A stretch of DNA of 64,000 nt. Origin: Oopsacas minuta. Lineage: Eukaryota > Animalia > Porifera. Below, one piece after another: positions 28,294 through 50,646 of the stretch (its first letter is position 1; every line of letters begins with the position of its first letter). Position numbers and translations under genes: made by a program. The notes under the pieces are model-generated. The model worked only from the letters and a program-made list of their open reading frames with translations, was not told the DNA's origin and ran no database searches. The stretch lies in contig JAKMXF010000312.1 of assembly GCA_024704765.1 (NCBI GenBank), positions 62,001-126,000 of the forward strand, written 5' to 3'.

Positions 28294-28638
28294 ACTATTC
28301 TTCAGTTGTGGATATCATACTAATACTTACGTTTGTTGTTGTTTGTTGTTTATTTGTTGTTGTTATTATTTGTTTACGTGTTGTTATGCTAGGAAGATTG
28401 AACCTCTAGTTGTTGTGTAGTCCATTATTAGTAAATCTAATTTTATACTCATATATCCATATATGGTCATTGTCAGGGCTATATTGACAACAATAACTGG
28501 CTATAGGTATTTGAACTATATTCTGGGCCTATTTATACCCATTTTAACACCTTTTCGAATAGGTTCCAGTTGCAATTTAAGGTTTTTAACTAGTTTTGTT
28601 AATGCTCAGTTAGGTGTTAGATCCATATGTCACATAAA

Positions 28639-31600
28639 ATGGATGCCACACAAGTGGCACTACTCAGACAGTTCGTTAAAGTGGTAACTGCCAAACCTGA
28701 GATCTTACAGCTACCTGAGATGGGATTCTTCAAAGAGTGGCTGCTGAAGTTAGGCGCCACAATCCCAGAACCAGAACCAGTACCGGAACCAACTAAAGAG
28801 GAACATATGGAGACCTCCTCACCCCCTAAGGGGCCGACTAAAATACCCACTCAAGAGTCTCCTAAAAAAGAAGAAGCAACTGTAAGCATTCCTTAGTTAC
28901 AATAATGGCATATAAGAATGTATATCATAAGGTTAAAAGGCTAGCAATTGATTGGTTAGGATCTGTAGTGTATATTCAATCAAGTAAACCCTCACACTTG
29001 ATTGGTCTAGTTGTTACTATTAATAGATTTCTCTACTTTTAGCCGCCAGTTGTTGAGAGCTCATCAGAGTATGAGGAGTCTCCTGAATCAGATCTGGATC
29101 TAGACATGACAGGTGTTGTAGAGGAGGATATTATTCAGAACCAAGAGATGGGGGACCATAATAAAGAGGTGAGGGATTAGTCAAGGGACCATGGATACTC
29201 AAGAGGTCATTTATCATAAATGGCGGACAGTTGTATCCAGTAACCTGATAGCTCGATGGGTGTATCTGCTGACACCTTTTATAAATATCATGGATACAAT
29301 TTGATGTAATTGGAATTTACGAAAAGTGACCCTCTTCATGATCCATAGTCCCATTAGAGCGTCCATTTTTCATGCGATCTGCACCCTTGTAACCAGAGCG
29401 ACAGATTTATTTACACCCAAATATCTCCAAGAAAGTAGCATTCCAATCGCTCAAAAGACTTTGGTTGTTTGTTTGTTTGTTTGCTTGTTCATTTGGTTAA
29501 TTGTTAGGTAAGTGAGGAGGACATGGAGAAGGCAACAGAGCTACGGTCAGACGCTATGTCCAGGGCATCAGATGGTGACATAGAGGGTGCAGTTGCCATC
29601 TTCACAGAGGCTATTAAACTGAACCCTAGCTCTGCTCTACTCTACTCTAAGAGAGCTAGTTTATACATCAAGCTGTCCAGACCTAATGCTGCTATCAAGG
29701 ACACCACCGAGGTAATTGTGTATTCTATTGAAATGTGTCACTTTAATTCGATTAGTTACCCTGCTACTTGAATGCTAGCCCCTCACTGAGGGTGTGCAAA
29801 TACCAACGAGGTAACCATGGAAACTGGGACATAACACGTCACAGAAGTACGTTAGGGAGTTGGTGAATATAATGCTATGATTCATGCTATGTAATATGTA
29901 ATTATTCAAAAGTTCAATCGCAATATTAAACAAATATTCGCAGAATAATATTTACACAAAATATCCTTTAGTTTAATATTATTAGTTCCTATTAATAGCA
30001 TTACATTATACTATATTATGGAACTAATTAATGTATAATTTCAATAGCATATATTGTGTAATGTTATACTAGTATTATCCAGTATTCGTCAGGATTTGTA
30101 AGCAAATTTAACAAATAATAACAAACAAATAATAACATTACTGAAGACGAACAAGAGAAATTATCCAACAACTTATCCTGTGGGTTCAGTTATTTGTTTT
30201 GTATTATTGGTACCATTTAGTATAATTGGGCCAATTCGGGACTACCTTGGCCCATTTTAACTCGATTATTGGATGTTTGTATGGTCCCATTTCTGGCCAG
30301 GTGGTCTGCATTCCTGGTGGCTGTATCATATGTCCTACTTGTGGATTTGACCACTTAACAAGACCCATAGGGTCAATTATTGAGAGGTAAGGTCCCAACA
30401 GTATCCGACTAGAGGTGACAATACACCATTTATGGAATTATCTGAAGGTTAGATACATATCATATATTTTAATAACAAATATTCTAATCATAGTTACGGT
30501 TACTCTCAGCATCATAAATAGTCTGATAACCACTTGTGCCATCAACACCTATGTTCTGTCTCATATAAGGGAAACAAGATAGAGAGGTTCTGAATCCGTC
30601 AAGAATTAATCTGGCCACACTTCTTAAGTGGTCCGTATGATTTATCAATTTTAGTCCTCTGACACTCTGCTTGTACTTACAAACTGTTGCTATGGAGTAG
30701 AGTATAAGGAATGTGGCTATTATTAGAACTATCACTCCAACTAGGATGTACCAATTGCCCCAAATGCCAGCTGTAATAATATAACACCCCTGTTTAGTGG
30801 TTAATTGCAATACCACATTGTTATTTTGCAATCCGTCGAATTTGAATTGTGTCGCTGTTTCGCCATGTTGACACTTTATATACAATTCTGAGTGTTTGGT
30901 AGGTTTTTCACCTTGAGGTGTGAATTGAAACTGTGCCATAATTGTGCCGTAATCCTCTGTATTTGGAACTATAAACTTGACAGATTTTTGAGTACCCATT
31001 GAGTAGCTACCACTGCCACTTGTGACACAAATAGCATTATCATCTGATTTCATACAACCAGGCAAATCGAAGGATTGTTTGCAAGGAAAATACGAAAAAT
31101 TTTTAGTGCCATTTTCCGCAGTGAATTGTAGTCCTTCTAGGTTGCTAAGGTCAACTGTACCTTTGGAATGCTGGCATTTACAACTCGATAGGCGTTTACA
31201 CTCTTCCTTACCGCCGTAAACACAAACAAATAATGCGTAAAGTAAAAAGAACTCAAAAACAAACATCGAAAATTCTCAGCCTATCAAATTCATGCTTTTC
31301 TACCTACAAACTCAATTCCTATGGCTTCTACTCGTAACTAAGCAACCACAAATATTTGACATACTACATGATCTTTGAATTTACCCTTTATTGTACACAA
31401 CATTATCTGACACTTCCAAACGGCTATAAATACCCAAAACTCACTAAATTTTATGCAAAAAACTTCATATATTATCACTATGAAAATATTCAGAATACTC
31501 GCATACCTATCTCTCCTCACCGTTGCTATAGCAAACAAAGAGGAATGCAAAAAAATAACGAATTGTAAATGCCAGCATTCCAAAGGCATTGTTGATCTGT

Positions 31601-32378
31601 CAAGCATTTCTTCACAAGTTTTCACTACTATAAAAGATCAGATTATGTACAGGTATTTCCCGTGTAACCAAACGGAGAGCATGACCGCTAGTTGTAGCAA
31701 ATCGGACGACAATGCTGTCTGTCAGTTGGACCAGAAAACTAACCTGGTGCTGGACTGGGGACAGGAGGACAGTGTCTCGTTTCTGGTACCAAACAGCCAG
31801 GATTATAGTGTCACCATCGCTAAATTTGTGTCGAAAGACAATGAGCGGAAGACGGAACTATATCTTGCTTGTCCTAAAGAAGGTAAAGAGCCAGAGGGTC
31901 TCGAAGTTTTGGAGGTACAGGGACGGAATGTAGAGCTACGTCTCACTTCAAAAGCTGCCTGTTTCACACCTAACACTCCGACCAAACCCACAACCAAACC
32001 AACCACCAAACCAACCACTAAACCTGCCATTAAACCTACTACCAAGCCACCCACCAAGCCACCTGGTAAACCCACTAAATCGCCTCCTCCAATTTTTCAG
32101 TTCGACATAACGAGATTGGGACACTGGTATGGTCTCGTTGGACTTATCACTTTGTTCCTTAGTCTATTCTTCTTATATTTTGTAATCAGATTTGTGAATA
32201 AGTACAGAGGAAAGGGAAAGACCTATGGACCATTAGAGGGATGTTCCTATCCCATAGGTCTGTTCATTGACGGATTTTTGTGTGTGTGTTCTTGTTTCCC
32301 GTTTTGTAGAAATGCGATTGGGAGACGGACGGTTGAGTACCATGCCCTTCGTGCTGAGGAAGAATATGTAAACGGTCA

Positions 32379-32415
<37 letters not shown>

Positions 32416-35400
32416 AGCTATAATTCTATTAATAGTCATTACCATTAGTGATGTTGATCTGTTGACAGTTATTGAGTAATTGCATTTATTTGTGTATTGT
32501 TTATTTTAATTTAATAATAATAATAGTTAGCATGTGGAATGTTTAAGGTTTTTTTCTTACAAATAAATTCACAAATAAGTAAACAAACAAACAAAACAAA
32601 CAAAACAACAAGTTCCCTCCATTTATACATAATAATATATCTTTGATTCAATTATCATTTTACTAAGAGCAAATAAATAATAATAAATAATAATAAACAA
32701 CACAACAACACAACAACAATCATATAACACTAGATAACTCACTCCTAAAAGGAGAATAACAAGAAAATACAAACAAAAATCCATCTTTAAACAAATAAGG
32801 TGTTTCTCTCCAAAAACTAACATTAGGAATTATTTCAACACCTCGTGCTCCTCTCACACATATTTGGCATAAAAACCCACCAATAAAATAGACCAATAGG
32901 AATGTACCCCCTAGGACAACTAATAGAATGAATAACACCGGTTCATTCTCAATGGTAAAATGTCGTAATTTGATTGGACAAGCGTTCTCAGTCACTAATC
33001 TGAATTTTAACTTTTTTTCATCATATGACAGAATTGAAAATGTGTCGCCCTGTCTCTCTATGCCACTTGTACAAATTGCCTCCACAGTCACAATTATATC
33101 TCTGTTTGTGTATATCACACTTGTTGTGAAATGTGTCGTATTTGATATTATATTGAATTCTACGTTTGTTTGTGTAGCAATTACATAATACTTCTCTACT
33201 TTTGTTATTGTCTCTTTGAGACATAAACTTGCTTTGCTATTCTTTGTACATACTTTAGTGTTCCAATCTGCTAAAATTGCGCAAGGATAATACCTATGAA
33301 GACAATAATAACAACAATAATGAGTGTGTAATTCACAGACAATTATTATTAATTCAATCAATTGATTCGTATACAAAATTGCAAAATAATTATTATTTCG
33401 AACTATTATAATAATTGCTATGGAATTGCCAATTAATTCCTAATATTATACCAATTATAATCCCGTGATTCTTGTCGTATTTTAGTGATGGAGTTTTCGA
33501 ATAATCTATTGCTCCTAGAACTTTGGGACGACGCGTACTGTTCGAAAAGATGTCAGCAATACAGAATTTCATATGGTAGTAATTTCCTAGCCCAATTAGA
33601 TTTGAGGGTTCACCCAGTACGTAATATAGGCTCACATTATATTCGTTCAAATAATTGTACAAATTACGTCATGGTTTGTTATGCCTATCTGAGAAACTGA
33701 TTGGTTTATAATATACTCTAAAATACAGAAAACAGAAGTCGACTGTATTTCTATAGAATTGTATTATCCATAGTCCAAAACATGAACTTACTTATATTCC
33801 AAATATGTTCCATTCATGTGATGATGCGCTATGAAATATTTTCCTCTCAGTTTTGATAGATCCACCTTCTCGCGAGATTTATAGACACAAGAACAGCTGT
33901 TAATTCGCCTACAAACCTCACTCAATACAGTTTGTATGCAAACTATAAATAGTATCAATGTTGTTATCTGCATCTATAAACATACAAGAATGTATCCAGC
34001 TGCAAAATGCAGTCAACTCCTGTTAGATGAAACACGGATATAGTGAAGTCTTAATTGTACAAATATGGTCACAAACCGTCAAAGTAACATATATCCCATC
34101 AGATATATTAAAGTGGGTATCAGGGCCCCTTTGATATAACAGGAGTTTACTGTAAATATTCGAGATTTTAAATATCTAATTAATATCTTAAAACACCTCT
34201 CAGAGAGGTGACGAATATCTAACCCAATCTAATTGCGATTTAATCGTCTTATTAAATATTTGGAAAAGCTATTCTAATCTTAAAATGTTACAAAAGTGTA
34301 TCTGTTGGTTACATCCAGGCTCAATTGGTTATTCCTCTTTTAAGAATAATTTACAATATCTTGTCATTACTATCCTATGTGTTCTACTTCCCCTGTCACG
34401 CATAGTATTACATATTTGTCCAGCTAATCAGTGGATTCAACCCTTTGATAATACAACTGATATATCTATATTTGACAAACACAAGACCCCAGCTTCCTAA
34501 TAGTTATGTTACATAAACTCATTCAAACGGTGCGTGGGTATCCCTATATAAATGTGAGGGAAAAATTGTTTGTGAGTTATTATCCAAGTTTAAATACACA
34601 AAAACACGTAAATTCAATACAGTTTTATTTTTTTGATATATGAAATGTTGATATTTTCACACCTTCAAGAGCCAATTCAAATCCTACTAATCCTATTCCT
34701 TGCTTATCTCATAACTTGGATTATTTGTCTTTTGATAACTATATTATTTGTGTGTACTTTAAGCGCCATATTAATTATCACCCTTTTAAGAGGCAGAGAA
34801 TATTCACATATATTAAGAGTACATAACACCTCGCTCCATTTCCTATTCCACATATGTCTTGTGCCTCTATACTCAATGCTTGGAGTGCCACTTGCAATAT
34901 TTTACGTCATTTTGGCTACAATTTTGAACTTTGGGTTGCTGTTTTGGACACTAACTTGGATGTTATACTCAAAGATATTGACACTATTCTTTGAGACAAA
35001 AACCAATATTGTATCTTACAAATCATTCGAACGTGCGAACTCAGCAAAATCAGATGAATGCTATCAATTGAAACAGCTGGTCTTAAAAAAACACATTTGA
35101 GGATTTTACACCTTTTGTATGCTATTTATACTTTGTTATTTGTTATGTCAAGTTATATATTAAACAGGAAATATAGGAATGTGTACCTTGAGTGTCTGTG
35201 GGATTGTAGGAACATGTGTGGTCCAAATAATCTACTGTTATTATCTAATCAAACCTCCCCCGAGCGGGTAAAATAGCTTTAGCGAATTCCTAGTCCCTTA
35301 CAGATGATCTTTCATAAACGCGGTAGTATTTTGGGCGTCCCTGACTGGCCTAGCTTATCCATGGTTCAGTAATGCAAGCAAATCGTGCGTATAGATAAAT

Positions 35401-38400
35401 CTGTGGAGGTAACACTGAATTTCTATCAGGTCATGATAGAAGCTTCGCTATTAATCTGTACGCACGATTTGCTTTGTATTACTGAACCATGGATAAGCTA
35501 GACATTATGTGAGCAATAATTCTTCTAATCGCATTAACAGATCGTATAGTAGTTTTGTTTACCTTTCTCAATAAACACAAACAACAAATTCACATATAAC
35601 TTGAATATTGTACGCACAATTCTCTGTTAGATATTTATACTATTCCCATCCACAATGTGAATCAACCAGCTGATAATCACGTGAATATTTGCATTGTTGA
35701 ATATATGAAATTTATAATAGGTGTAGGGAAGGCTATCTTCAAAATATATACCTGTCTTATTGTCATGAATATATGCATATGAGTACATTAAAGGGGCGAT
35801 TTGCACCTAGGGCAGGTGATTTACTGAGGATATAATCTTCACACCTTTTTCATCACGGTATTTCTCATATTTTTAGGAATTTGAAGTGGCATAATATGTG
35901 GCAGCCTGACACACACCATTCGGCCATAGCGACACCAAATTCTTACTGATACAATATAGTGTAGTATAGTTCTAAATATAGAACACGTGATAGGGTATTG
36001 AGTATCCATTAGGGACATATATATTGTTTGAGAGTGTATTAGCACACAAATGAATTATTTAGGAATAATACTAACAGTGTGCCTGCTTAACACTGTATTC
36101 ACTCAGGAGGTTAAAAAAGTGGGAGATTGTGTCTGGGCCACTTCTGACCTCACACTTGACCTGAGAGACTTTGGATTTTTGGAATACGATAACCCTTCAG
36201 GAGTAGCTACCTACAGGTATTACCCATGTACCATTAACGCTGATTGGGATCCTGATAACTGTGCTATTCGAAATAAACCCGCACTTTGCCAGGAGAACTA
36301 TGAGGCTGTGACATATATAGTCGGTAAGCAAGAAACTGCAAGTGTGAAAATAGTGTCGAAGGACACATTTGAATTAACATATACTGATGGTAATGATGGT
36401 AGAAAAGGAGTTGTCACTCTAAGTTGTTTCCAAAATTCAGATGAATTCAAGTTTGATTATGAGGAGTATCCTACTTATTTCTTTTCTATGAGTGTAGAGA
36501 ATGCTTGTAAGAGTGAGGGATACCCCGGGGGGTCTACAGGAGGAGATGATGGAGGGTTCGCGTTATTCATAATCCTAGTGCTCGCGTCTATCTTCGCCGT
36601 GACAACGTATATTGTAGGAGGAATGCTGTTTATGTATTTGCATAAGAAAGAGAGAGGAATTGGATTAATACCAAATCTAGCTTTCTGGAAAGATTCCCCA
36701 TTTCTATTCAGAGACGGATTCTTGTTTACTTTCTCATTTATCCCGCAGGTCAGAGAGTACATGAAGGATCACATTAAAGAGGATTACTCCAAAGTACCCA
36801 GTTAATATTGTTTGTATTTACTTGTTGTTTGTATTGTTATTATTAGAGTAGTAATTACATGTTGTACATATATTTCACTTTGAAACGGTCAAGGTTGCAA
36901 TGCTCTCCTTTGATTTGAGACATACAAAGTCTTAATGACTTCCTCCATATCTATAAATAACCAGAAGGCATATTTTAACACCTCCCTTAATTAATCATAT
37001 GACAGAAATTCTAAGAAAATAGCACATTTTCTACTGAATTAATAACTAAGAATAGAAGTATAGTTCTATAATATAGAACACGTGATAGGGTATTGAGTAT
37101 CCATTAGGGACATATATATTGTATGAGAGTGTATTAGCACACAAATGAATTATTTTGGAATAATACTAACAGTGTGTCTGCTTAACACTGTATTCACTCA
37201 GGAGGTTAAAAAAGTGGGAGATTGTGTCTGGGCCACTTCTGACCTCACACTTGACCTGAGAGGAATTGATTTCGTACAGGACTTCGATGACAATAACCCA
37301 GCCACCTACAGGTATTATCCTTGCAAGATAGAGTCGAATTGGGATGATACAGAGTGTACTGTCAGTAAGCAGACAGCTCTCTGCCAGGAGTATCATGGAA
37401 GTAAATATCTAATTGGGAGACTAAATCAAGTTAGCGTTAAGTTAATTAAGGAAAATACTTTTGAGTTAAAGTATAGCGGAGGTAGCAAGAGTCGAACCGG
37501 AACAGTAACGTTAACCTGCTTCCAGAATTCGGACAGTTTTGCGTTCGTTCGAGAAGAAAGTGACCCTTTTAGATATTACTTCAGTATGAGCGTGAGTACT
37601 GCTTGCAAAAATGGAGTGCCCGGGGGGTCTACAGGAGGGGATGATGGAGGATTCGCGTTATTCATAATCCTAGTGCTCGTGTCTATCTTCGCCGTGACAA
37701 CGTATATTGTAGGAGGAATGCTGTTTATGTATTTGCATAAGAAAGAGAGAGGAATTGGATTAATACCAAATCTAGCTTTCTGGAAAGATTCCCCATTTCT
37801 ATTCAGAGACGGATTCCTGTTTACTTTCTCATTTATCCCGCAGGTCAGAGAGTACATGAAGGATCACATTAAAGAGGGTTACTCCAAAGTACCCAGTTAA
37901 TATAGTTTGTATTTACTTGTTGTTTGTATTATTATTATTATAGTAATAGTTTTACTGTTAAATGCGACAAATACCAATACCATTGTGCCTTCAAGGAGTC
38001 CCTGAGGTCTGACTGGGCATATATGTTGCTCACCATGGCACGAGCACTCAGGTCTCCTTTCATAACTTAATAATAATAAATAATGTTATAATAATGACAA
38101 TACAAACAAACAAGTAAATACAAACAATATTAACTGGGTACTTTGGAGTAATCTTCTTTGATGTGATCCTTCATGTACTCTCTGACCTGCGGGATAAATG
38201 AGAAAGTAAACAAGAATCCGTCTCTGAATAGAAATGGGGAATCTTTCCAGAAAGCTAGATTTGGTATTAATCCAATTCCTCTCTCTTTCTTATGCAAATA
38301 CATAAACAGCATTCCTCCTACAATATACGTTGTCACGGCGAAGATAGACGCGAGCACTAGGATTATGAACAACACGAATCCTCCATCATCCCCTCCTGTA

Positions 38401-41400
38401 GACCCCCCGGGCACTCCATTTTTGCAAGCAGTACTCACGCTCATACTGAAGTAATAATTAATAGGGTAATTTTCTTCTCGAACGAACGCAAAACTGTCCG
38501 AATTCTGGAAGCAGGTTAACGTTACTGTTCCGGTTCGACTGTTGCTACCTCCGCTGTAAATCAACTCAAAAGTATTTTCCTTGATCAAGTTAACGCTAAC
38601 TTGATTTAGTCTACCAATTAGATAATTACTTCCCCCATACTCCTGGCAGAGAGCTGTCTGCTTACTGACAGTACACTCTGTATCATCCCAATTCGACTCT
38701 ATCTTGCAAGGATAATACCTGTAGGTGGCTGGGTTATTGTCATCGAAGTCCTGTACGAAATCAATTCCTCTCAGGTCAAGTGTGAGGTCAGAAGTGGCCC
38801 AGACACAATCTCCCACTTTTTTAACCTCCTGAGTGAATACAGTGTTAAGCAGACACACTGTTAGTATTATTCCAAAATAATTCATTTGTGTGCTAATACA
38901 CTCTCATACAATATATATGTCCCTAATGGATACTCAATACCCTATCTTGTGTTCTATATTTAGAACTATACTTCTATTCTTAGTTATTAATTCAGTAGAA
39001 AATGTGCTATTTTCTTAGAATTTCTGTCATATGATTAATTAAGGGAGGTGTTAAAATATGCCTTCTGGTTATTTATAGATATGGAGGAAGTCATTAAGAC
39101 TTTGTATGTCTCAAATCCAAGGGTCTATCAAAGGAGAGCATTGCAACCTTGACCGTTTCAAAGTGAAATATATGTACAACAATTACTTAGTACTTTAATA
39201 ATGACAATACAAACAAACAAGTAAATACAAACAATATTAACTGGGTACTTTGGAGTAATCTTCTTTGATGTGATCCTTCATGTACTCTCTGACCTGCGGG
39301 ATAAATGAGAAAGTAAACAAGAATCCGTCTCTGAATAGAAATGGGGAATCTTTCCAGAAAGCTAGATTTGGTATTAATCCAATTCCTCTCTCTTTCTTAT
39401 GCAAATACATAAACAGCATTCCTCCTACAATATACGTTGTCACGGCGAAGATAGACGCGAGCACTAGGATTATGAATAACGCGAACCCTCCATCATCCCC
39501 TCCTGTAGACCCCCCGGGGATTCCCCCACTCTTACAAGCATTCTCTACACTCATAGAAAAGAAGTAAGTAGGATAGACCTCATAATCAAACTTGAATTCA
39601 TCTGAATTTTGGAAACAACTTAGAGTCACCTTCCCCTCTCTACCCGAAAAGCCTCCCTCGTAAGACAACTCAAAAGTGTCCTTTGTGAGTGACTTAACGC
39701 TTACTGTGTTGAGCTTACCTACAATGTAAATGGACCCGTCTTGGTGGTTTTTCTGGCAGAGTGCCGGCTTGTTATCAGCGGTACAACCATATTGACTCCA
39801 ATCAGAGTTTATCTTACAGGGATAATATCTGTATGTAGCTTGGCTAAAATCATCGTCGTATTCTAAAAATCCAAAGTCTCTCAGGTCAAGTGTGAGGTCA
39901 GAAGTGGCCCAGACACAATCTCCCACTTTTTTAACCTCCTGAGTGAATACAGTGTTAAGCAGACACACTGTTAGTATTATTCCAAAATAATTCATTTGTG
40001 TCCTAATACACTTTCATACAATATATATGTCCCTAATGGATACTCAATACCCTATCACGTGTTCTATATTTAGAACTATACTACACTATTCCATGATTTG
40101 GATTATCTTAACATTATTTTGAGAATTGAATGACTATAATCTCCGTGGTGAACATTTCTAATCCAAGAATATGTGTGGAGATATTCTAATGCTTAATTCT
40201 TGTATATATATTAATTTTACTAATAACAAGTAAACAAACAAACAACAAATAATAAGGGTATCAAACTTAGATACCATCTGGTAAATTATTATAATTCCTT
40301 GCGGCTGTCTGTCTGGTATTCTCCAACCCTCCCATAAGTTTTACATGCAGTCTTAACACTCATGCTAAAATGATATATTGGAAATACTTCATAATCAAAG
40401 TAGAATACGTCATCATCTTGGAAGCATGTAATGGTGACTATCCCTTTTCTATTATTATTTCCTCCAAAGTACATCAATTCGAAAGTGTACGGTTTCACTA
40501 AGGTGACAACCAGCTGACTTTGATTACCAATTAAGTGAGTAGGACCTTGATACTTCTGACAGAGAGCAGGGTTGTTTCCGATCGTGCATACACTCGGGTC
40601 CCAATTAGAGTACACTTTGCAAGGATAATACCTGAAAGTTCCTGGGTTGTTATGATTGAAATATTCGAAAAAATACAAATCTGTCAGGTCAAGTGTGAGG
40701 TCAGAAGTGGCCCAGACACAATCTCTCACTTTTTTAACCTCCTGAGTGAATACAGTGTTAAGCAGACACACTGTTAGTATTATTCCAAAATAATTCATTT
40801 GTGTGCTAATACACTCTCAAACAATATATATGTCCCTAATGGATACTCAATACCCTATCACGTGTTCTATATTTAGAACTATACCATCACGACTTTAGTA
40901 TTGCACTATACCCAAATGGCCTTCTTTACAATCACAGCTTATTAAATCAACAGAATTCTAAATACCATTTGCCTCGTAGCGAAACTAAGCAACAAACCGC
41001 AAAGATGTTATTTAAGTTGTTAGAAACCAAACGTGTGCAAGTGTGGTGGGAGGTGTTAAATAGTGGCATGCCGGTCATACAGTTGAATTGCCCTAGGCCA
41101 AAGTGGTCAGGACATGGTCTGACTTATCTAACCATGTGTGTCACTCTGATGTCACATGGCTGTAACACAATCCACATCAGAGTATGCTTCAGTTAATATA
41201 TATAAACTCAAATTACAGAAGAAAAGTTACAATTCAAATGTATTGTATTATTCTTATACTAATTCTTGTCCCCCTAGCCAATGGTGCTAATTATAACTGC
41301 TCCTCTCAGACCCCGTGTTCCTGTAACCTCAAGGGAGTGGGGAATATGAACCTAACAGGTGTTAAGTTCCATAACAACCAAACATACGTAGAATCATTTG

Positions 41401-44133
41401 GATTTGATGGGTTCAGGTATAGATATTATCCTTGTGGTGCTGGTGGTCCATGGGGTAACGGAGACTGTAAGAAAGGGGACACAACCTGCCAGTACACTGG
41501 AGACGAGGGGTACTTCTCTCTGGGAACAGCTGTTAGATATGTTATATCACAGGCAGTGAGTGATAAACACATGCCATATGTTAGTTTTAGTTACTATGGT
41601 GGAACTAAGGGAAGGGCATCAACTGTGGAAATTATTTGTGACCCAGCGAGTTCTGTTGATAAATTGCAATTTATGGGTGAATATCCCACGCATGCGTATA
41701 ACTTCAAGTTAAATACAGTTAAGTTTTGCCCCAATATATCACCTCTATTCTGACGCAGTTTGTAAAGTATTTTGTTGTTGTTGTTGATATTATAAATTAA
41801 CTAAAATACACATATGATTACAATATATTTATAAACTAATATTTAGCTGGGCATTTTCTCATAATCTTCTTCAATTGTTTTCTTCAAATATTTTCTAACA
41901 AAAGGTATACAAGAAAATACAAACAAAAAACCATCAAAAAATAGGAACGGTGCTATTATCCAGAAACCGATATTCGGGATCAGTCCCAATCTTCGTTCTC
42001 CTTTGCATGCCATAATTCCAACACCAATGCCTAAGTATAGTATCAATCCAACTGGTAGCGTCACCATGAGAACAATGAATAATATATTACCTATTGGGGC
42101 GTCGGGTTGTTTATACAAACAAGCTTTAGGTGTCATAAATACAAAATTGTAGTTTATTATAGGACTCTCTGAGATGAATTTCAACTCATGAGACCCTCTA
42201 ATATCACACATAACTCTAACGGTAGCATTCCTTCTTCCATTAATAAAATCTGAGGTCCCATCTTGGAATAGAAAATCGAAATATGTATTGTCCCCCTTGG
42301 CAACAGCTCTAGTTATCTCGTAACTATTAGACTTACCGAGGACGTAATATTCACCGTCCCTGGTTTGTTGGCAGACAGCTGGGTGGTTTTCGATGGTACA
42401 AACTCCACCCCAATCAGCTTTAACCCCGCATGGATAATATCTATACGTGTAGACCCCTGATGTGATCTCTATATAGTCCAATCCACCTCCGCTACCCGCC
42501 AGATTCAATAGCCCAGCTGATTTAAGATTACATGTACACGCGGATTCCAATGTACAGTTTTCGTTGCTAGCGTATGATTGTGCAGCTATTAATAGTAACA
42601 CAATGATTTGAAAAATACCAAACATTTAAATATTCGATTAGACTGTATTGGACTATTTATTAGGTTTTTTGGTATATTAAATTTCAAATCTATTTTAATA
42701 TTATCTCATCGAATAGATTATTATTCTAATTATACTCATTTAGTTCCAATTGGAACCTATTTTGTATATGTTGATTGAGGAAATCGTAATACGTAGTGTA
42801 ACCTCCACAGACATGGTGTCAGGTACTCCGAAATTGCTACCCTGTTCCTCCTTTATGGAGGTTCATTTTCATGGGACTAGGGATTCGCTTTATTTATCAC
42901 CTCGTTTCCAGTAATTTAACACCTTTTGTTTGGTTCTGTTTCTGGTCAAGTGACCAGATTAACTGGTGTCTGTAATATACGGAGTATCCGGTACGTATTT
43001 CTGATACCGTTATATATTCGTATAATTACTCTGTCTATGAGCTGTTAATATCATTTGATATATTGCCTAACCTTATTAGGTGTCACATGGCTGTAACACA
43101 ATCCACATCAGAGTATGCTTCAGTTAATATATAAACTGGAATTACAGAAGAATAGTTATAATTCAAATGTATTGTATTATTCTTATGCTAATTCTTGTCC
43201 CCCTAGCCAATAGTGCTAATGTCAACTGTTCCACTGAAACGGCGTGTTCCTGTGACCTTAAGGGGGTTGGGATCATGAGCTTACACGGGAAGAGATTCAA
43301 CAAAGAAAGTTACGTTGAGACATTGGGAAGTGACAAGAACACGTATAGATATTACCCTTGTGGTGTTGATAAAAATTGGGAGGGTGGCTGTACAACAGCT
43401 TCTACAATATGTCAGTATAGTGCGGCTGACGGATTGTATCACTCAATAGGGGAAACGAATACCTTTCAGGTGATAGAAGCAGTTGGCGATGGCGACAAAC
43501 CTTATATTAAATTCATGTACACGGGGGGAACAGATGATCGTGAATCCAATGTAAAAATTATTTGTGAACCCAAGAGTACTCAAGATACGCTAGTGTTCTT
43601 AGGCGAGTTTACTACTAAGACATATGATATAGAAATGACTACTGCTAAAATATGTCCGAATGCTAACCCAACACCTTCAGGTGGTGGTGGTGGTCCTGAC
43701 ATCCCAGCTCTGTTTATTTTAGTCCTATTAGTTCTATTTTTAGCCACAATCACGTATATAGTTGTTGGCGTGTTGTTGATGGTATTTTGGAAAGGGGCAA
43801 GAGGTCTTGAAGTGATTCCAAATCTGTCTTTTTGGAAAGATTTCCCATTTTTGTTTAAAGATGGAGTCTTGTTTTCATTTGCATACATTCCTGCTGCTCG
43901 ATCTCGTATCGGGGGAGAGAAGAGTTATTCACAACTCAAGTGATTGTTTGTTTACTTGTTTGTTTACATTTTATTAGCTTTTATTTTGTATATATTTTTG
44001 TTTATCATTATCATTAATAAATAAGTTATCTGATATCCCCGGGGTGTATGAATCCATAGTCTTATACCTGAAGCTATCAAAACAAGCACTATTTATCTAA
44101 TAATATATTCTACAAACAAACAAACAAACAAAC

Positions 44134-44165
<32 letters not shown>

Positions 44166-45498
44166 TTTATATTGTTAAATCTAGGCAATCAATTTGAATC
44201 CTGATTCAGCACAGGGTTATAAATGGCGTGGAAGGGCTCATGCTATGCTAGGACACTGGGCAGAATCTGCTAAAGATTTACAGACAGCTCTCAAGCTAGA
44301 CTATGATGAAGATGTGAGTTATAATTTGTAATACATATACGGTATGGAAGTCCTAGCCGAGTATTCGCGTGCCTACAGGCGCGATTGAATGAAAAAATAT
44401 ACAGGAGATGCTGGTTATAAGAACCTATTGAGGCAGAGGAAGCAGCTTCCTCTCGCTATTTCGTGCGTAGCCTCATCGTAATCGCCATTATATTGAGGCA
44501 AATATCCCATCCTTGCCTCCTCGCTCTGGTATCTCTAGTTACCCGCAGAGAACATACCAGATATACGCACTATCTCTGGAAAACGGTTCTCATATATTCC
44601 TGTATACTATACCGGTTCTAAGCACATAAATTGCTACTCCCAAGGGTGTTCTTATAATATCCGCTGTACTGTATTCAGAATGTGTAATGTTATTAACACC
44701 TCTTAAGTGAATTATGTATAATTAGGCAAATGAATGGCTTAAAGAAATAAAGACTAAATCTGATAGAATAAGAGAGCATACTCAAAAGCAGGAGAGGAAG
44801 TCTAGAGAGAAGGAAACATATATGAGAAAGAAGAGAGTTAAGAGAGCAAAAAGACAATATGACGCGGTATTATTATTTATAATATTTATCATTTGTTTGA
44901 ATTCTGATAAATAACAACAAATAGCAACCATTGTCACATGCGGAATACACTCCCTGTATCCGAATAGAAAATGAGATACTTTCGATTTCAATTTTCACAT
45001 TCCTGGACAAACGCGAGTTTTCCCTAATAGGTGACAATATTTTGGACCATGAGGTCATTTTAGAGGATCGATTAGCGAAGAATCAATGAAGTTTATACAC
45101 GCCATTTTTAGGATAAGAAAGCTGAGGAAGAAAGAATGAAATCAATGCCATCTGGAGCGGGTGGTTACCCAAGTGGCATGGGTGGTGGCCCGCCAGGAGG
45201 AGGAGGAGGTATGCCACCTGGCATGAATGACATATTTAACGACCCAGAATTGATGGAACTTATGCAAGACAAAGAAGTGATGGAAGCTTTCCAAGATTGT
45301 GCCTCCGATCCTTCGAAACTTTCTAAATATGCCAACAATCCTAGAGTTATGAAAGCAATGCAAAAAATGCAAGAAAAAATAGGAGGCCTAGGGGGCATGG
45401 GGGGCATGGGAGCAGGTCCCACGGGGGGCATGGGGGCAGGTCCTATGGGGGGTATGGGTGCAGGTCCAAGCCCCATGAGTGATGACATGCCAGATTAG
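28639..45498 (+). CDS. ST13: Hsc70-interacting protein (Hip): dimerisation domain, acidic region, TPR, GGM repeats, STI1/DP domain
   Basis: Exons 28639-28881, 29043-29168, 29508-29711, 44185-44313, 44726-44866, 45112-45498, all joined by phase-0 introns. The TPR reads through the 14,473-bp intron (…[10 protein letters not shown]|[19 protein letters not shown]…KLDYDED), followed by FNDPEL…NNPRV. Confidence 0.93.
30484..31266 (-). CDS. MRH-domain type-I membrane protein (M6PR/ATG27-like), divergent
   Basis: Signal peptide, C.....C.C....G.VDL, YFPC, TM, RGLKLI…DGF tail, YQTI motif. Confidence 0.8.
   Translation of the reverse strand: MFVFEFFLLYALFVCVYGGKEECKRLSSCKCQHSKGTVDLSNLEGLQFTAENGTKNFSYFPCKQSFDLPGCMKSDDNAICVTSGSGSYSMGTQKSVKFIVPNTEDYGTIMAQFQFTPQGEKPTKHSELYIKCQHGETATQFKFDGLQNNNVVLQLTTKQGCYIITAGIWGNWYILVGVIVLIIATFLILYSIATVCKYKQSVRGLKLINHTDHLRSVARLILDGFRTSLSCFPYMRQNIGVDGTSGYQTIYDAESNRNYD
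31480..32448 (+). CDS. MRH-domain membrane protein with a PTTK mucin-like stalk and poly-Asn tail
   Basis: ATG 31480 (MKIFRIL), [25 protein letters not shown], (PTTK)n, TM, LFIDGF, YHAL, (AAC)n. Confidence 0.82.
32720..33973 (-). CDS. MRH-domain membrane protein, two exons (33973-33792, 33293-32720)
   Basis: The signal peptide/CRRINSCSC exon joins through a phase-2 GT-AG intron to K|YYPC. TM followed by [26 protein letters not shown]. Confidence 0.82.
34645..35100 (+). CDS. Possible small multi-TM protein, unassigned
   Basis: ~150-aa open, strongly hydrophobic ORF; no family motif recognised. Confidence 0.35.
   Translation: MLIFSHLQEPIQILLILFLAYLITWIICLLITILFVCTLSAILIITLLRGREYSHILRVHNTSLHFLFHICLVPLYSMLGVPLAIFYVILATILNFGLLFWTLTWMLYSKILTLFFETKTNIVSYKSFERANSAKSDECYQLKQLVLKKHI
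35351..35500. mobile_element. MITE with ~46-bp TIRs and TA flanks (Tc1/mariner-type)
   Basis: ta|gcttatccatggttcagtaatgcaagcaaatcgtgcgtatagat … atctgtacgcacgatttgctttgtattactgaaccatggataagc|ta. Confidence 0.7.
36050..36805 (+). CDS. MRH-domain membrane receptor, copy A
   Basis: 251 aa: signal peptide, [50 protein letters not shown]. Confidence 0.9.
   Translation: MNYLGIILTVCLLNTVFTQEVKKVGDCVWATSDLTLDLRDFGFLEYDNPSGVATYRYYPCTINADWDPDNCAIRNKPALCQENYEAVTYIVGKQETASVKIVSKDTFELTYTDGNDGRKGVVTLSCFQNSDEFKFDYEEYPTYFFSMSVENACKSEGYPGGSTGGDDGGFALFIILVLASIFAVTTYIVGGMLFMYLHKKERGIGLIPNLAFWKDSPFLFRDGFLFTFSFIPQVREYMKDHIKEDYSKVPS
37145..37900 (+). CDS. MRH-domain membrane receptor, copy B
   Basis: 251 aa, same termini as copy A. 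Confidence 0.9.
   Translation: MNYFGIILTVCLLNTVFTQEVKKVGDCVWATSDLTLDLRGIDFVQDFDDNNPATYRYYPCKIESNWDDTECTVSKQTALCQEYHGSKYLIGRLNQVSVKLIKENTFELKYSGGSKSRTGTVTLTCFQNSDSFAFVREESDPFRYYFSMSVSTACKNGVPGGSTGGDDGGFALFIILVLVSIFAVTTYIVGGMLFMYLHKKERGIGLIPNLAFWKDSPFLFRDGFLFTFSFIPQVREYMKDHIKEGYSKVPS
38130..38885 (-). CDS. MRH-domain membrane receptor, copy B'
   Basis: 251 aa, inverted near-copy of B. Confidence 0.9.
   Translation of the reverse strand: MNYFGIILTVCLLNTVFTQEVKKVGDCVWATSDLTLDLRGIDFVQDFDDNNPATYRYYPCKIESNWDDTECTVSKQTALCQEYGGSNYLIGRLNQVSVNLIKENTFELIYSGGSNSRTGTVTLTCFQNSDSFAFVREENYPINYYFSMSVSTACKNGVPGGSTGGDDGGFVLFIILVLASIFAVTTYIVGGMLFMYLHKKERGIGLIPNLAFWKDSPFLFRDGFLFTFSFIPQVREYMKDHIKEDYSKVPS
39237..39995 (-). 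CDS. MRH-domain membrane receptor, copy A'
   Basis: 252 aa, inverted relative of A. Confidence 0.9.
   Translation of the reverse strand: MNYFGIILTVCLLNTVFTQEVKKVGDCVWATSDLTLDLRDFGFLEYDDDFSQATYRYYPCKINSDWSQYGCTADNKPALCQKNHQDGSIYIVGKLNTVSVKSLTKDTFELSYEGGFSGREGKVTLSCFQNSDEFKFDYEVYPTYFFSMSVENACKSGGIPGGSTGGDDGGFALFIILVLASIFAVTTYIVGGMLFMYLHKKERGIGLIPNLAFWKDSPFLFRDGFLFTFSFIPQVREYMKDHIKEDYSKVPS
40289..40798 (-). CDS. MRH-domain protein without TM (predicted secreted), A/B subfamily
   Basis: Same promoter and first 38 aa as A/B, complete MRH domain, stop 17 codons after the last Cys. Confidence 0.75.
   Translation of the reverse strand: MNYFGIILTVCLLNTVFTQEVKKVRDCVWATSDLTLDLTDLYFFEYFNHNNPGTFRYYPCKVYSNWDPSVCTIGNNPALCQKYQGPTHLIGNQSQLVVTLVKPYTFELMYFGGNNNRKGIVTITCFQDDDVFYFDYEVFPIYHFSMSVKTACKTYGRVGEYQTDSRKEL
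41238..41753 (+). CDS. MRH-domain protein without TM (predicted secreted), relative of the 43167 gene
   Basis: ATG 41238 (MYCIIL); shares ~90 bp of upstream sequence and the signal peptide with 43167; ends [10 protein letters not shown]. Confidence 0.78.
   Translation: MYCIILILILVPLANGANYNCSSQTPCSCNLKGVGNMNLTGVKFHNNQTYVESFGFDGFRYRYYPCGAGGPWGNGDCKKGDTTCQYTGDEGYFSLGTAVRYVISQAVSDKHMPYVSFSYYGGTKGRASTVEIICDPASSVDKLQFMGEYPTHAYNFKLNTVKFCPNISPLF
41843..42625 (-). CDS. MRH-domain membrane receptor
   Basis: 260 aa: [26 protein letters not shown]…FFDGF, YEKM. Confidence 0.88.
   Translation of the reverse strand: MFGIFQIIVLLLIAAQSYASNENCTLESACTCNLKSAGLLNLAGSGGGLDYIEITSGVYTYRYYPCGVKADWGGVCTIENHPAVCQQTRDGEYYVLGKSNSYEITRAVAKGDNTYFDFLFQDGTSDFINGRRNATVRVMCDIRGSHELKFISESPIINYNFVFMTPKACLYKQPDAPIGNILFIVLMVTLPVGLILYLGIGVGIMACKGERRLGLIPNIGFWIIAPFLFFDGFLFVFSCIPFVRKYLKKTIEEDYEKMPS
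43167..43943 (+). CDS. MRH-domain membrane receptor, closest to the canonical CD-M6PR/ATG27 tail
   Basis: 258 aa: [47 protein letters not shown]. Confidence 0.9.
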   Translation: MYCIILMLILVPLANSANVNCSTETACSCDLKGVGIMSLHGKRFNKESYVETLGSDKNTYRYYPCGVDKNWEGGCTTASTICQYSAADGLYHSIGETNTFQVIEAVGDGDKPYIKFMYTGGTDDRESNVKIICEPKSTQDTLVFLGEFTTKTYDIEMTTAKICPNANPTPSGGGGGPDIPALFILVLLVLFLATITYIVVGVLLMVFWKGARGLEVIPNLSFWKDFPFLFKDGVLFSFAYIPAARSRIGGEKSYSQLK

Positions 45499-45865
45499 TT
45501 GGACAATTCTTTGGTGATAATTTGAACGTTATTAGAGTTGTATTAGATAGCAGTAGTATGTTCGTTAACATATTTCCTATTAGTTATTGATGTCTTTTGT
45601 TATGAAGTTTTCAAAGGGTGTGAAGTGGTAGACACTCGTTCATACATTTACAAGAATCTTATCAGGGGGTTATCTAGGTGCTTAGGGGTGTCATGAAGGT
45701 CACGAACTGGCATTATCCATAGTATTCTTTATTGAAAAGCGTCTTATTAACAACCGTAAAATATTCAAATTGGTTTATAATGTGTCGCAAGCCACAAATA
45801 CAATAAATATGCATTTACGTTAAATGTATAGAATATTGAATTATTAAATAATTGAGTGTTTTAAG

Positions 45866-47470
45866 ATGAAAACTAAGCTTCGCGTAGTTTTGTTTTGTAG
45901 TTTGATTCTGTTATTATTTATCCTAACAACGCTGCGTGCCTTATGGAATGCAAAGTATTCAGATATACCTCTCATCTCTGAACCTTTCAAATTTCAAAAT
46001 ATTTTTCTAGAATCTGATGAGGTTTTAGGTAACTTTTCTGATGTGTGAATTATGTAACTGTTGTATAATAATATATTTTATAGGTGTTACAGCATTATGG
46101 GAGACATGGGACCAATGGGTGCAAACAGATGGTACCTTATACACCTTGGAGCAGTCCAATTCCCATACAATGTCCTCACTAATAAAATTACTAGCAAAAT
46201 CAGAGATTATAAGTGCTAGTCCTGCTGTTGGTGGATCTCAGCTGAAGATTTCATTGGTCCTCCAAGGAGGACAGAAGGCCGTGTTTAGACCAATGAGATA
46301 CGACAGAGACTTCGTAATAGAGGAGAGAGGAAATAAAGGAGCAGATAGGCATAATGGAGAGATAGCTGCATTCCATTTGGCTAGGATACTAGGTTGTTGT
46401 GCTAGTGTATATTAGCCTCCACTGGGGAAACCCTCTAATCTGATTGTGCGATACATTCGTCACCTTTTATTAAGATACATACATACTACCAAATTTGAAA
46501 TTAACCAAACAAACTTGACAAATATTTTAGGAATAACAAGAGTACCTCCAGTAGTCGGGAAGAGATTAAACTTAGAAGAATTACTACACAAATCTGATAG
46601 ATCTCTATCTGATACAATATACAGAAATCCTCGTACTTCTAATATGTGTCTGTATGGTGTATGCTATTACTGTAGTAAAGACGATCCAGTATGTGCTAAT
46701 GGTAAGTTAGAATGGTGTTTCCTTTGTGTGATATTAACACCTGACTCAGAAGTAGATAAGTACGGTTTAAGCAATTAAATGGAGTGACAGGAGCGCCGAA
46801 ATATGCTACCTCGTTCCCCCTTTAGTGGAGGTTACACTGTCACAAATTATCCACTTTAATGTGTGATGTGTCGTTAGGGAATATTCTAGAAGGATCTCTG
46901 TCACTCTGGATTCCTGACAGATACACAATTATGAAATTCAAGAACCCTTGTTGGAACAAGGACTGTAGGAGAGAACTGTTACGTGGCCCTCTGTTCTATA
47001 CTGGACCTGCACTATTGGACCTCATTGATATAGCAGTGTTTGATTTTCTGATCGGAAATATGGATAGACACCAGTGAGTTTGTTTGTTTGTTTGTTTGTT
47101 TGTTGTTTATCGGGGTGATGATTATAGTTTTGAGATGTTTTCACAAAATTCCGAATCAAATCGTATTCTCCTTCTTGACAACGGAAAGAGTTTTGGGAAT
47201 CCCTTCAGGGACGATTTTATCCTTCTAAAACCACTTCAACAACTTTGCATGATTCGTAACTCAACATACCAAACGCTCCTAACAGTTTCCAGGAAACCTA
47301 GTCTCACAATCCGCTTAACAAACTCTTTGTTAACAGACCCAATTAGCCCTGTATTAAATGAGGAACATTTATCAGCTATAGACAGAAGACTAGGGTCTGC
47401 TTTAGATATCATAGAACAATGTATTAGTAACCATGGTAACAGTGTATTAGAGGATAGAGGATATATTTAG
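45866..47470 (+). CDS. FAM20B: FAM20 secretory-pathway kinase, FAM20B (xylosylkinase)-like
   Basis: Exons 45866-46028, 46084-46392, 46531-46701, 46878-47073, 47128-47470. Type-II anchor, GSQLK, DRHNGEIAAFHL, CLYGVCYYC, DFLIGNMDRHHFE, LLDNGKSFGNP, DPISPVL. Confidence 0.88.
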
Positions 47471-48079: not shown

Positions 48080-48251
48080 ATTATTTGTTTGTTTGATTCT
48101 TGTAATTAATCACTTTGTGTATACATATATCTCCCTCAACCAATCAATTTACAATCTCAGATAGGTGTTAGAAACCATTTTCCACCCTTAGATTATCATA
48201 TGGCTTCAGAACAATCCATAAACTTTTGTTAATCTAATATTAGTACTGTTG

Positions 48252-50646
48252 ATGGCAACGGAATCTCAAGATTGGAATGCGAATATGAAATTTTGCGCTT
48301 CAAATTCAAACCCATCGCCACAAATATTGGATTGGGACTTAACCAATGATCTCATAGCTTTTGGTTCCAATTGCAATATACACATTCTCAGCCAATCAAA
48401 TGGTAACTTTTCTACCCATCAGGTGTTAACGGGTCATACTTCAAATATCAGCTGTTTGAGATGGTTGAGTTATCCCAATACAAAAACAACAACAACAACA
48501 CCTCTAGTTTTGTTGGTAACTGGTACTACTGGAGGGGGGATCAGGGTGTGGGAGAATTCTCCGCTAAAATGTACACAAACTTTTATTTTAGGCGAGAATT
48601 CTATTAATAGTATCTCTGCTAGGATGACTGGTTTAGTCTCACATTTAATAACAGCTGCTTGTTCAGAAGTTGCTATTTTTAGAAGAGATTTGAAGGTGTC
48701 AAATGCCACTTTTGAGGAAATACACCGAATAGATTTTGGCTACAATTACGTATTAGGTGTTGATATAACATATATTGGAACTGGAACTGAATTGGTTCCA
48801 ATTCTAGCTTGCGGTAGTGATAATGGTAAAGTCCATTTGTATAATATTTCTGATTTGACTAAAATTTGTGATTTGCTTGGACACGAAGATTGGATTAGGA
48901 ATGTTGAATTTTGTGAGACATCTGATGGTCAGTACTTAGCAACCGCTTCTCAGGATTGTTATGTGAGAATATGGCGCCTTAATCTTGTAATTGAGTGTGA
49001 AGAATCAGCTGAGTTGAAGATGAAAGAGATTGTTTTCCACACCTCTTCTAGCTCAGGTAGTAAACAAAAATATATACAAACAAACTAATAAACAAACAAT
49101 TAATACATCTATAGGAGTATTGAAGTCATACAAAATACAGCTAGAGACGGTATTACAATGCCATGAGGACTGGTGCTATAGTGTATCATGGGCTCCTGTT
49201 AGTTCCAGTATTAGTTCCAGTTTAAAACTGTTGACAGCTTCTATGGATCGTACAGTGGCTGTGTGGTCTCCAAGTGGCACAGATGGTGTGTGGGAAGAAT
49301 CGATGCGAGCAGGAGAAGTTGGTGGAAACACTTTAGGATTATACGGAGCTAGATTTGGACCTGGAGGTGTTAAAATTGTGTCGCATGGGTACCAGGGGGC
49401 ACTACACCTCTGGGAATATGTGTCTGATAAATGGGAGGGCAGACCTATAGTAGGAGGACATTTTGGGACTGTCAGTGATTTGAGTTGGTCCCCATCTGGA
49501 AAATATTTCATCTCAGTTTCTTCCGATCAAACTGCAAGACTTTGGGCTGAATGGTGTGAAGAGTGGCATGAATTGGCACGCACTCAAATACATGGATACG
49601 ATCTAGTTAGGTGTTGTGCCATATCTGACACAATGTATGTGTCGGCTGCTGATGAGAAAGTGGTTAGAGTATTTAGCTCACCTCTGACATTCATTGATAA
49701 TTTCAAACACCTAACTAACCAATCAATTTCCAGGCCACTTAATGTGCCACTTGGCGCTAATGTTCCAGCTTTAGGTCTGTCTAACAAAGCTGTTTTTAAT
49801 GTGACACAACAAACAAAAGAAAACACCTTTGATGACTTCAAAAACGCGCCACAATTCACACCTTTCAATCTGTCCTCTCCCCCTTTGGAAGAAACTTTAT
49901 TGCAACACACTTTATGGCCAGAAGAGAGGAAGCTATATGGCCACACCTTTGAAGTGTACGCCCTCGCCACCAGTAGAGATGGCACAATAGTGGCATCCGC
50001 CTGTAAAGCTTCTAAACCAGATCAGGCAGGTGTTATATTGTGGTCGGTTGAGAAGTGGTCTCAAATACAGACACTTTCATTCCATACACTCACCATTTCC
50101 AAATTAGCATTTTCAAATAATTCTCAATTGCTGCTAGCAGTTTCACGTGATAGAACATGGTCGCTATGGAAACGCAATGGAATGCAGTTTGAACTAATTT
50201 CTCATTCAAAACTGTCTGTTATGAAGCATACTAGAATTATATGGGACTGTTCTTGGACCATGGATGATGTTTATTTCGCTACAGGCAGCCGAGATATGAA
50301 AATTATTGTTTGGGGTGAGGTTGTCGATTCAAAATGGGATTGTGTCAGTCAGAAACCATTAACACTTGAAGAGGCGGTTACAGCACTTCAATTTTGTCAT
50401 TTTTCTAAACGACACATTCTTGCAGTTGGCCTTGAAAATGGGAAAATCTTAATTGTAACTTTTTGTGAAGAGACCAAGGATCTGAATATCGTAAAATTTC
50501 TTGATGAGTATCATGCTGCTATGGTAACCTGTATTGCATGGAGACCAGAATCAACAATTGGAATGCATAGAAATTATCAGCTGGCAACTTCTAGTGCAGA
50601 TTATTCAGTTAGAATTTATAATATATCACCTCCAAATATTGTGTGA
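48252..50646 (+). CDS. ELP2: Elongator complex protein 2 (WD40)
   Basis: Exons 48252-49056 and 49115-50646. Motifs GHEDWIR, LATASQDCYVRIW, EVGGNTLG, ELARTQIHGYD, ANVPALGLSNKA, TLWPEERKLYGH. Confidence 0.95.

Follow-up and report, generated by a model that had tools for sequence, protein, structure and literature searches.

The genes analyzed here have their closest described counterparts among membrane proteins that carry an MRH domain. The cation-dependent mannose-6-phosphate receptor (CD-MPR; M6PR, MPR46) is a type I protein of ~250 amino acids with one luminal MRH domain, the sugar-binding residues Gln-Arg-Glu-Tyr, and a membrane span followed by a tail with a Phe-Trp motif. The cation-independent receptor (CI-MPR/IGF2 receptor) carries 15 MRH repeats on a single chain, with sugar-binding and non-sugar-binding domains mixed. 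Yeast Atg27 (Pfam PF09451) combines an MRH domain with one span and a short tail, which, like the nested receptors described below, ends in a tyrosine signal. Glass sponges are known to harbor single-exon genes within the introns of other genes, such as glassin, whose nested arrangement is conserved between Aphrocallistes and Oopsacas (PMC10282587). Here, we analyzed a stretch of 64,000 nucleotides from the Oopsacas minuta contig JAKMXF010000312.1 (the window; animal DNA with ~37% GC), in which 11 genes for MRH-domain proteins lie inside one intron of the gene encoding ST13/Hip. We favor reading this locus as a glass-sponge array of CD-MPR-like, single-domain MRH type I sorting receptors that grew inside the ST13 intron, an account that we consider fairly probable. 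The gene-family expansion is real and undescribed, yet it consists of known parts and does not represent a new kind of system.

The nested family shares the CD-MPR features listed above, including a homologous span and tail, but its ectodomains are strongly diverged, and both the cysteine pattern and the profile lie nearer to the CI-MPR repeats. In addition, the loop that provides the phosphate contact is shorter, the tail has a YxxPhi end instead of an acidic di-leucine, and the set comprises 11 copies at one locus, of which three lack the sugar site and two lack an anchor. CI-MPR gives the best profile match through its domains 3 and 5, the fold matches of gene g01 include its non-lectin domains 8 and 11, and its mixture of binding and non-binding MRH domains recurs at this locus; here, however, the domains are encoded by separate genes, each with its own anchor and tail, instead of 15 repeats per chain. 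In contrast to Atg27, which is a single gene associated with Atg9 vesicles and whose MRH domain is dispensable, the nested family is expanded and its sugar site is mostly conserved. Finally, the locus differs from glassin-type nested genes in that one intron holds 12 genes, 11 of them paralogous, on both strands.

The host gene ST13/Hip lies on the plus strand and comprises six coding exons, each bounded by GT/AG on direct reading of the sequence. Its open reading frame (ORF) pieces match the Pfam families HipN (2.8e-18), TPR repeats, and STI1-HOP_DP (2.2e-11).

28627-28881, 29043-29168 and 29508-29711, plus strand: ST13/Hip exons 1-3, HipN domain and first part of the TPR region
29712-44184, plus strand: ST13 intron 3, 14,473 bp, GT..AG, phase 0, with 12 genes nested inside
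44185-44313, 44726-44866 and 45112-45498, plus strand: ST13/Hip exons 4-6, remaining TPR, charged linker and STI1 DP domain

The remaining introns measure 161, 339, 412, and 245 bp, in agreement with the size contrast (14,473 bp versus 161-412 bp) drawn in an earlier, sequence-only reading of the window. That reading had also joined exon 3 (end 29711) to exon 4 (start 44185) in phase and in the middle of a TPR repeat, and alignment to the Hip chain 4j8d_A places the junction accordingly: exon 3 residues 2-66 correspond to chain residues 34-98, two leftover residues cover 99-100, and exon 4 residues 1-43 correspond to residues 101-143, so that the exons abut at 100|101. The junction is of phase 0, with GT at 29712 and AG before 44185. 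In the related-species locus L002, the corresponding ST13 intron (9,803 bp) has the same donor and acceptor positions, and L001 and L003 have the same acceptor. Judged by the abutting Hip residues, the phase, and the splice sites shared with related species, exons 3 and 4 appear to belong to one gene.

Within this intron, the sequence-only reading had counted 11 MRH-domain genes, five sense and six antisense, and tblastn, the family profile, and AlphaFold (AF2) models agree with this inventory. A tblastn search with all 11 ORFs returned zero further copies in the 64-kb window. Five genes lie on the plus strand (g02, g04, g05, g09, g11) and six on the minus strand (g01, g03, g06, g07, g08, g10), and all are single-exon genes with the sole exception of g03, which contains a 498-bp phase-2 intron. 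The nested genes are listed below; group C denotes g04-g08.

30484-31266, minus strand: g01, type I membrane protein of 260 amino acids with predicted MRH fold; profile E 1.4e-26
31453-32448, plus strand: g02, MRH protein of 331 amino acids with Pro/Thr-rich stalk and poly-Asn tail; profile E 3.8e-25, Pfam blank
32720-33973, minus strand: g03, MRH protein of 251 amino acids; exon 1 33973-33792, exon 2 33293-32720; ATG27 1.3e-13
34633-35100, plus strand: twelfth nested gene, multi-pass membrane protein of 155 amino acids, not MRH-related
36050-36805, plus strand: g04, group C receptor of 251 amino acids; ATG27 3.1e-13, Man-6-P_recep 5e-08; Phe-Trp tail, C-terminal YSKV
37145-37900, plus strand: g05, group C receptor of 251 amino acids; inverted twin of g06 (repeat I1, 852 nt, 97%)
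38130-38885, minus strand: g06, group C receptor of 251 amino acids
39237-39995, minus strand: g07, group C receptor of 252 amino acids; mirrors g04 outside codons ~48-116
40289-40798, minus strand: g08, group C copy of 169 amino acids with signal peptide and complete MRH domain, without membrane span and tail
41238-41753, plus strand: g09, anchorless relative of g11, 171 amino acids; ORF opens at 41184, likely start 41238
41843-42625, minus strand: g10, receptor of 260 amino acids; Phe-Trp tail, C-terminal YEKM; profile E 2.6e-57
43167-43943, plus strand: g11, receptor of 258 amino acids with the best known-family match; ATG27 2.3e-18, Man-6-P_recep 3.9e-12; C-terminal YSQL

The g03 gene model agrees in length and C-terminus with the annotated O. 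minuta protein P0025 (KAI6650271.1, LOD99_5950) and is thereby confirmed. Both g08 and g09 end just past the last cysteine of the MRH domain, and inspection of the sequence downstream of them revealed no anchor exon, frameshifted remnant, or membrane span; the gap between g09 and g10 is 90 bp. The twelfth gene, which the sequence-only reading had not listed, is kept at the equivalent position of the cluster in L002 (51% identity), L001 (39%), and L003 (36%), and neither Pfam nor Atlas assigns it to a family. In the public annotation, g11 apparently begins at an internal Met (P0001, 222 amino acids) and g09 at the second Met (P0013, 171 amino acids). The stalk of g02 consists of Thr/Lys/Pro repeats, and a run of 12 Asn lies close to its C-terminus.

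We used a family profile built from 102 members to relate the nested genes to known proteins. The profile recovers all 11 MRH genes (E 8e-24 to 1.5e-70) and matches CI-MPR at 4.7e-140 (domains 3 and 5 best, ~58-62 bits each), as well as CD-MPR (2e-8), glucosidase II beta, ERLEC1, and OS-9. The family profile was needed for this: g11 alone, as query against PDB sequences, retrieved no receptor, CD-MPR included. Pfam places g03-g07 and g11 above the curated cut-off of ATG27 and/or Man-6-P_recep; g01 and g10 remain sub-threshold, and g02, g08, and g09 receive no assignment. For ATG27 (PF09451, gathering cut-off 27 bits), the scores are 47-56 bits for g03-g07, 67.5 bits for g11, 23 bits for g01, and 20 bits for g10. 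The AF2 model of g11 (predicted local distance difference test score, pLDDT, 88.3) has CD-MPR as its top Foldseek match, and that of g01, the most divergent member (pLDDT 85.7), has CI-MPR and CD-MPR domains at the top. For both models, Foldseek returned CD-MPR, CI-MPR domains, and OS-9 at probability 1.0 with template modeling (TM) scores of up to 0.75. The other nine genes are tied to g11 and g01 by the profile (E 1e-24 to 1e-63). Since the models of g11 and of the divergent g01 both retrieve domains of mannose-6-phosphate receptors, the predicted MRH fold holds for all 11. Six cysteine columns are invariant in the 11 proteins, and at a seventh position the group C proteins have Trp and the other six (g01-g03 and g09-g11) have Cys. 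An exhaustive database search yielded 2,650 cluster representatives at E <=0.001, and the nearest named relatives are proteins labeled 'cation-dependent mannose-6-phosphate receptor-like' or 'Autophagy-related protein 27' from Oscarella, amphioxus, molluscs, a hemichordate, a nemertean, starfish, and a brachiopod.

Shared fold does not translate into a shared sugar site. Profile columns align with Gln, Arg, Glu, and Tyr of CI-MPR domain 3 at a spacing of 43/25/5, and we take these columns and their spacing to be those of the published essential mannose-binding residues. The complete Q-R-E-Y set is present in g04-g11 (Q83, R125, E147, and Y153 in g11), g02 keeps three of the four positions (Q-R-E-V), and g01 and g03 read V-K-L-V and L-I-gap-L. 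Orthologues of g01-g03 in L002 likewise lack the site, that of g02 reading M-R-E-A, and relatives from Oscarella, amphioxus, and molluscs retain Q-R-E-Y. The description of the set as 11 lectins thus stands for the fold, found in 11 of 11, but not for the canonical sugar residues, found in 8 of 11, and it is therefore eight genes rather than 11 that resemble functional mannose-binding lectins.

The membrane span and the block following it (Ile-Pro-Asn, two residues, Phe-Trp ... Asp-Gly) correspond to positions 164-220 of Pfam Man-6-P_recep and form the best-conserved section of the family. Type I topology with a CD-MPR-type Phe-Trp tail is found in g03-g07, g10, and g11; g01 and g02 have a diverged version of this arrangement, and g08 and g09 lack it. 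The g01 tail has no Phe-Trp and contains a GYQTI motif, the same letters as the lysosomal signal of LAMP-1. A C-terminal YxxPhi motif (YSKV, YEKM, and YSQL, in the ends YSKVPS, YEKMPS, and YSQLK) lies at the C-terminus or close to it in sponges, amphioxus, and molluscs alike, and in the other animals it forms the very end of the protein. Tail signals of this type serve adaptor-mediated traffic among the Golgi, endosomes, lysosomes, and the plasma membrane. Taken at the level of motifs, the tails point to Golgi-endosome-lysosome sorting over surface immunity.

The prominence of the tail also bears on an alternative in which the proteins would be Atg27-like membrane-traffic factors, acting through tail-driven vesicle formation with a dispensable luminal domain. 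ATG27 outscores Man-6-P_recep in all Pfam-scoring copies, and an Atg27-like role therefore stays a live alternative, albeit one that we rate as unlikely. The nearest Atlas clusters are ATG27 as well, the architecture (luminal MRH domain, single span, short tail) is shared, the tails are the most conserved part, and yeast Atg27 can dispense with its MRH domain in autophagy (bioRxiv 10.1101/2025.11.06.685569). Retention of the sugar residues in 8 of the 11 proteins and in distant animals nevertheless argues for a working lectin site, and purifying selection acts on the MRH cores. A housekeeping autophagy factor would moreover hardly be expected in 11 copies, two of them tailless.

Next, we compared the locus between species. 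The sequence-only reading had supposed an expanded and diversified family, and this is borne out in glass sponges, with 7 to at least 12 MRH copies at the ST13 locus across four assemblies. In L002, seven MRH genes lie between ST13 exon 3 (1096-1284) and exon 4 (11088-11216) in the order and orientation of the window. L003, from a more distant species, presents a mirror image of the array in the same ST13 intron: counted from exon 4, the order is g11-like, g10-like, three genes of group C, the twelfth gene, then one g03-like and one g01/g02-like gene. L001 contains at least 12 copies adjoining exon 4. In a maximum-likelihood tree, the genes fall into six well-supported subfamilies (g01, g02, g03, group C, g10, and g09/g11), each with cross-species orthologues, and species-specific duplications are confined to group C and the g09/g11 group. 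Orthologues of g10 are present in L002, in L003, and in a transcript of Vazella pourtalesii (P0015); because the L002 gene is sister to the Vazella transcript, these relatives are glass sponges. In other invertebrates, the named relatives amount to one or a few 'CD-MPR-like' proteins, a figure that reflects named entries and not per-species counts. Relatives with the same expansion and a purely lysosomal function had been cited beforehand as an outcome that would speak against the sequence-only reading, and of these two parts it is the expansion that was found. The Oopsacas genome paper makes no mention of nested MRH genes, and a search of the sponge literature returned nothing on mannose-6-phosphate receptors, phosphotransferase, or ATG27.

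Anchorless copies are also present outside O. minuta. Two in L003 (1572-2147 and 2759-3334) lie beyond the 3' end of ST13, and three in L001 (8746-9303, 11105-11680, and 13491-14066) lie within the cluster and read M-R-E-F at the sugar positions. This recurrence suggests that soluble forms were retained or arose repeatedly. A lone g11-like copy at L004:10001-10759 lies outside ST13, between genes for a PP1-type phosphatase and a CCT/TCP1 chaperonin, and has an altered sugar site (E-R-V-F).

We then evaluated selection on the nested genes. In orthologue pairs, synonymous sites are saturated and pN is ~1/3 of pS, with ratios of nonsynonymous to synonymous divergence (dN/dS, omega) of 0.11-0.24, the pocket-less g01-g03 included (g01 ~0.24, g02 ~0.11; g10 ~0.11). 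For the anchorless copies, the ratios against their nearest paralogues are ~0.18 (g08/g05) and ~0.28 (g09/g11). Group C has a composite structure: identity among g04-g08 is 96-100% over the stretch that begins ~90 bp before the start codon and runs through codon 38, and g04-g07 are 96-100% identical from ~codon 160 to ~45 bp past the stop, while the cores of g04-g08 between these conserved ends are 40-60% identical. Synonymous divergence follows the same division (dS 0-0.09 in the ends, saturated in the cores), and core omega ranges from 0.16 (g04/g07) to 0.54 (g05/g06). Near-unchanged ends around synonymously saturated cores with omega <1 therefore indicate that the ends were converted or recently duplicated around old cores held by purifying selection, as far as sequence comparison can tell. 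Positive selection or hypermutation as the source of the variable core was considered and rejected, given the saturated core dS, the near-unchanged ends, and omega <1. Four of the group C genes are arranged as follows.

35956-40089: imperfect palindrome g04> g05> <g06 <g07 (repeat pairs I1, I2, I7, I10, I11)

The palindrome spans ~4 kb around a 187-bp centre, and its two arms share 96-99% identity outside codons ~48-116, in which g04 and g07 diverge. This divergent patch points to a conversion breakpoint within the MRH domain.

Four sequencing runs from one sample were available to assess transcription, three of them DNA-like with even depth and one RNA-like (X4). Contigs of the DNA runs tile 40200-45600 and are interrupted at repeats only. 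The RNA character of X4 is apparent from Illumina adapter ends and from GT..AG joints at 44313>44726 and 44865>45111, which are introns 4 and 5 of ST13; depth in this run is 1.7-2.4e5 over ST13 exons versus 9-540 over its introns. Contig depths over the nested genes, a rough guide to expression, are as follows.

g11: 5e3-2e4, with sharp edges
shared 5' part of group C: thousands (contigs with the g04-g07 base at 40726)
g08 contig, 40200-40713: ~243
g09 and g10 contig: ~278
intergenic sequence: 9-56

Thus, g11 and the g04-g07 group are transcribed, and g08 and g09 are at least weakly transcribed.

The number of paralogues, their gain and loss between species, and the division of group C into constant ends flanking a divergent MRH core could be accommodated by a diversified recognition repertoire, in which surface and secreted MRH lectins would take up food, symbiont, or pathogen glycans and g08 and g09 would serve as opsonins or decoys. 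Anchorless copies occur in three species and are at least weakly transcribed, and YxxPhi signals also drive endocytosis from the cell surface. Recognition of food, symbionts, or pathogens was the function advanced by the sequence-only reading, for which we found no pointer: dN/dS is 0.1-0.5 throughout, with omega of 0.16-0.54 for the cores, 0.1-0.25 for orthologue pairs, and no signal of positive selection, and the tail motifs are of the endolysosomal kind typical of a Golgi-endosome sorting receptor. Furthermore, six old subfamilies are held one-to-one, unlike fast-turnover immune families, and three members lack a sugar pocket. We accordingly assign a low probability to this explanation. A related proposal, to which we give a slim chance, is that in the syncytial glass sponges a frame kept uniform by conversion displays old, distinct glycan-binding cores and, together with the secreted members, forms an innate lectin repertoire that would deliver microbial or food glycoconjugates to the endolysosomal system. 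If true, this would be an innate lectin repertoire derived from a lysosomal sorting receptor.

An artefact or decay, meaning a false palindrome, a misjoined ST13, or a pseudogene graveyard, is highly improbable: a 4-kb palindrome with near-identical repeat ends is difficult to assemble, g08 and g09 are truncated, and a long read spanning the whole intron was not seen, but the palindrome arms are 96-99% and not 100% identical and contain a divergent patch, the DNA-run contigs break at repeats only, gene order and intron recur in independent assemblies of other species, and all 11 ORFs are open with pN far below pS and with RNA support.

Several further features were observed around the nested array. 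Intron 4 of ST13 contains a high-copy repeat (~44363-44724; DNA-run depth 4,000-5,300 versus a baseline of ~250) with many loose read ends at 44542, 44574, and 44606; a small transposable element is the probable explanation. An (ACAA)n(CAA)n microsatellite at 44106-44177 lies immediately 5' of the exon 4 acceptor, and reads appear to be cut there. ST13 is followed on its 3' side by two genes, named solely from their ORFs and the Pfam marks of their relatives:

46041-47470, plus strand: Fam20C-like kinase gene
48249-50646, plus strand: Elongator-2-like WD40 gene

Both neighbors also trail ST13 in L002 and L001, which indicates a broader synteny.

Returning to the sorting-receptor array, we envision that an ancestral copy entered ST13/Hip intron 3, where duplications, both tandem and inverted, gave rise to six old subfamilies. 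Glass sponges would have retained the order of these subfamilies, and individual species would later have gained or lost copies of group C and of the g09/g11 group. In group C, conversion would homogenize the 5' flank, signal peptide, stalk, span, and tail, leaving the old MRH cores distinct. The eight copies with an intact pocket are predicted to bind mannose-type N-glycans on luminal cargo, and the Phe-Trp block and YxxPhi motif may cycle the receptors among Golgi, endosomal, and lysosomal compartments, with the cell surface as a possible further station, and differing cores would confer differing cargo preferences. For g01-g03, which appear to have kept the fold and lost the pocket, the ligands are probably other than mannose, as in the non-lectin domains of CI-MPR, and g08 and g09 may be soluble, either luminal or secreted. 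That the array is nested in ST13 most likely reflects history and not function. The sequence-only reading had described the array as sheltered in a constitutively transcribed host gene, which is speculation: ~12% of Aphrocallistes vastus genes are nested and glass-sponge microsynteny is high (PMC10282587), and with nested genes this common, sheltering by ST13 is unsupported.

Several observations weigh against the sorting-receptor account as a whole or in part. According to the profile alignment, the loop preceding the Arg is 5-7 residues shorter than in CI-MPR domains 3 and 5, in which the insert of 5-7 residues holds an extra cysteine and the phosphate contact; mannose-6-phosphate specificity of the nested receptors is therefore doubtful on sequence grounds. 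Acidic-cluster di-leucine is the C-terminal signal of mammalian mannose-6-phosphate receptors, and the C-termini of the nested receptors (YSKVPS, YEKMPS, and YSQLK) contain no acidic di-leucine. To these may be added the consistent Pfam rank of ATG27 over Man-6-P_recep. The splice between ST13 exons 3 and 4 is based on homology and conservation, the read-mapped stretch (40200-45600) lying downstream of exon 3. Contig depth gives only approximate expression levels, g09 being inseparable from g10 in X4, and a tree built from only the cores of group C does not resolve and so does not date them relative to speciation.

Invertebrate receptors of the single-MRH, CD-MPR-like type have been annotated yet are almost unstudied, and the ST13 locus supplies them as a natural panel, with eight paralogues that have one pocket in different surroundings, three pocket-less members, and two soluble ones, all built on a trafficking frame that is nearly identical. 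Such a panel suits the question of how P-type lectins choose their cargo and whether early animals made use of mannose-6-phosphate. Beyond the receptors themselves, the locus provides a clear, datable case of a gene family that expanded within an intron of a highly expressed gene and has remained in place in glass sponges, and of conversion acting on the ends of genes while sparing their ligand-binding cores.

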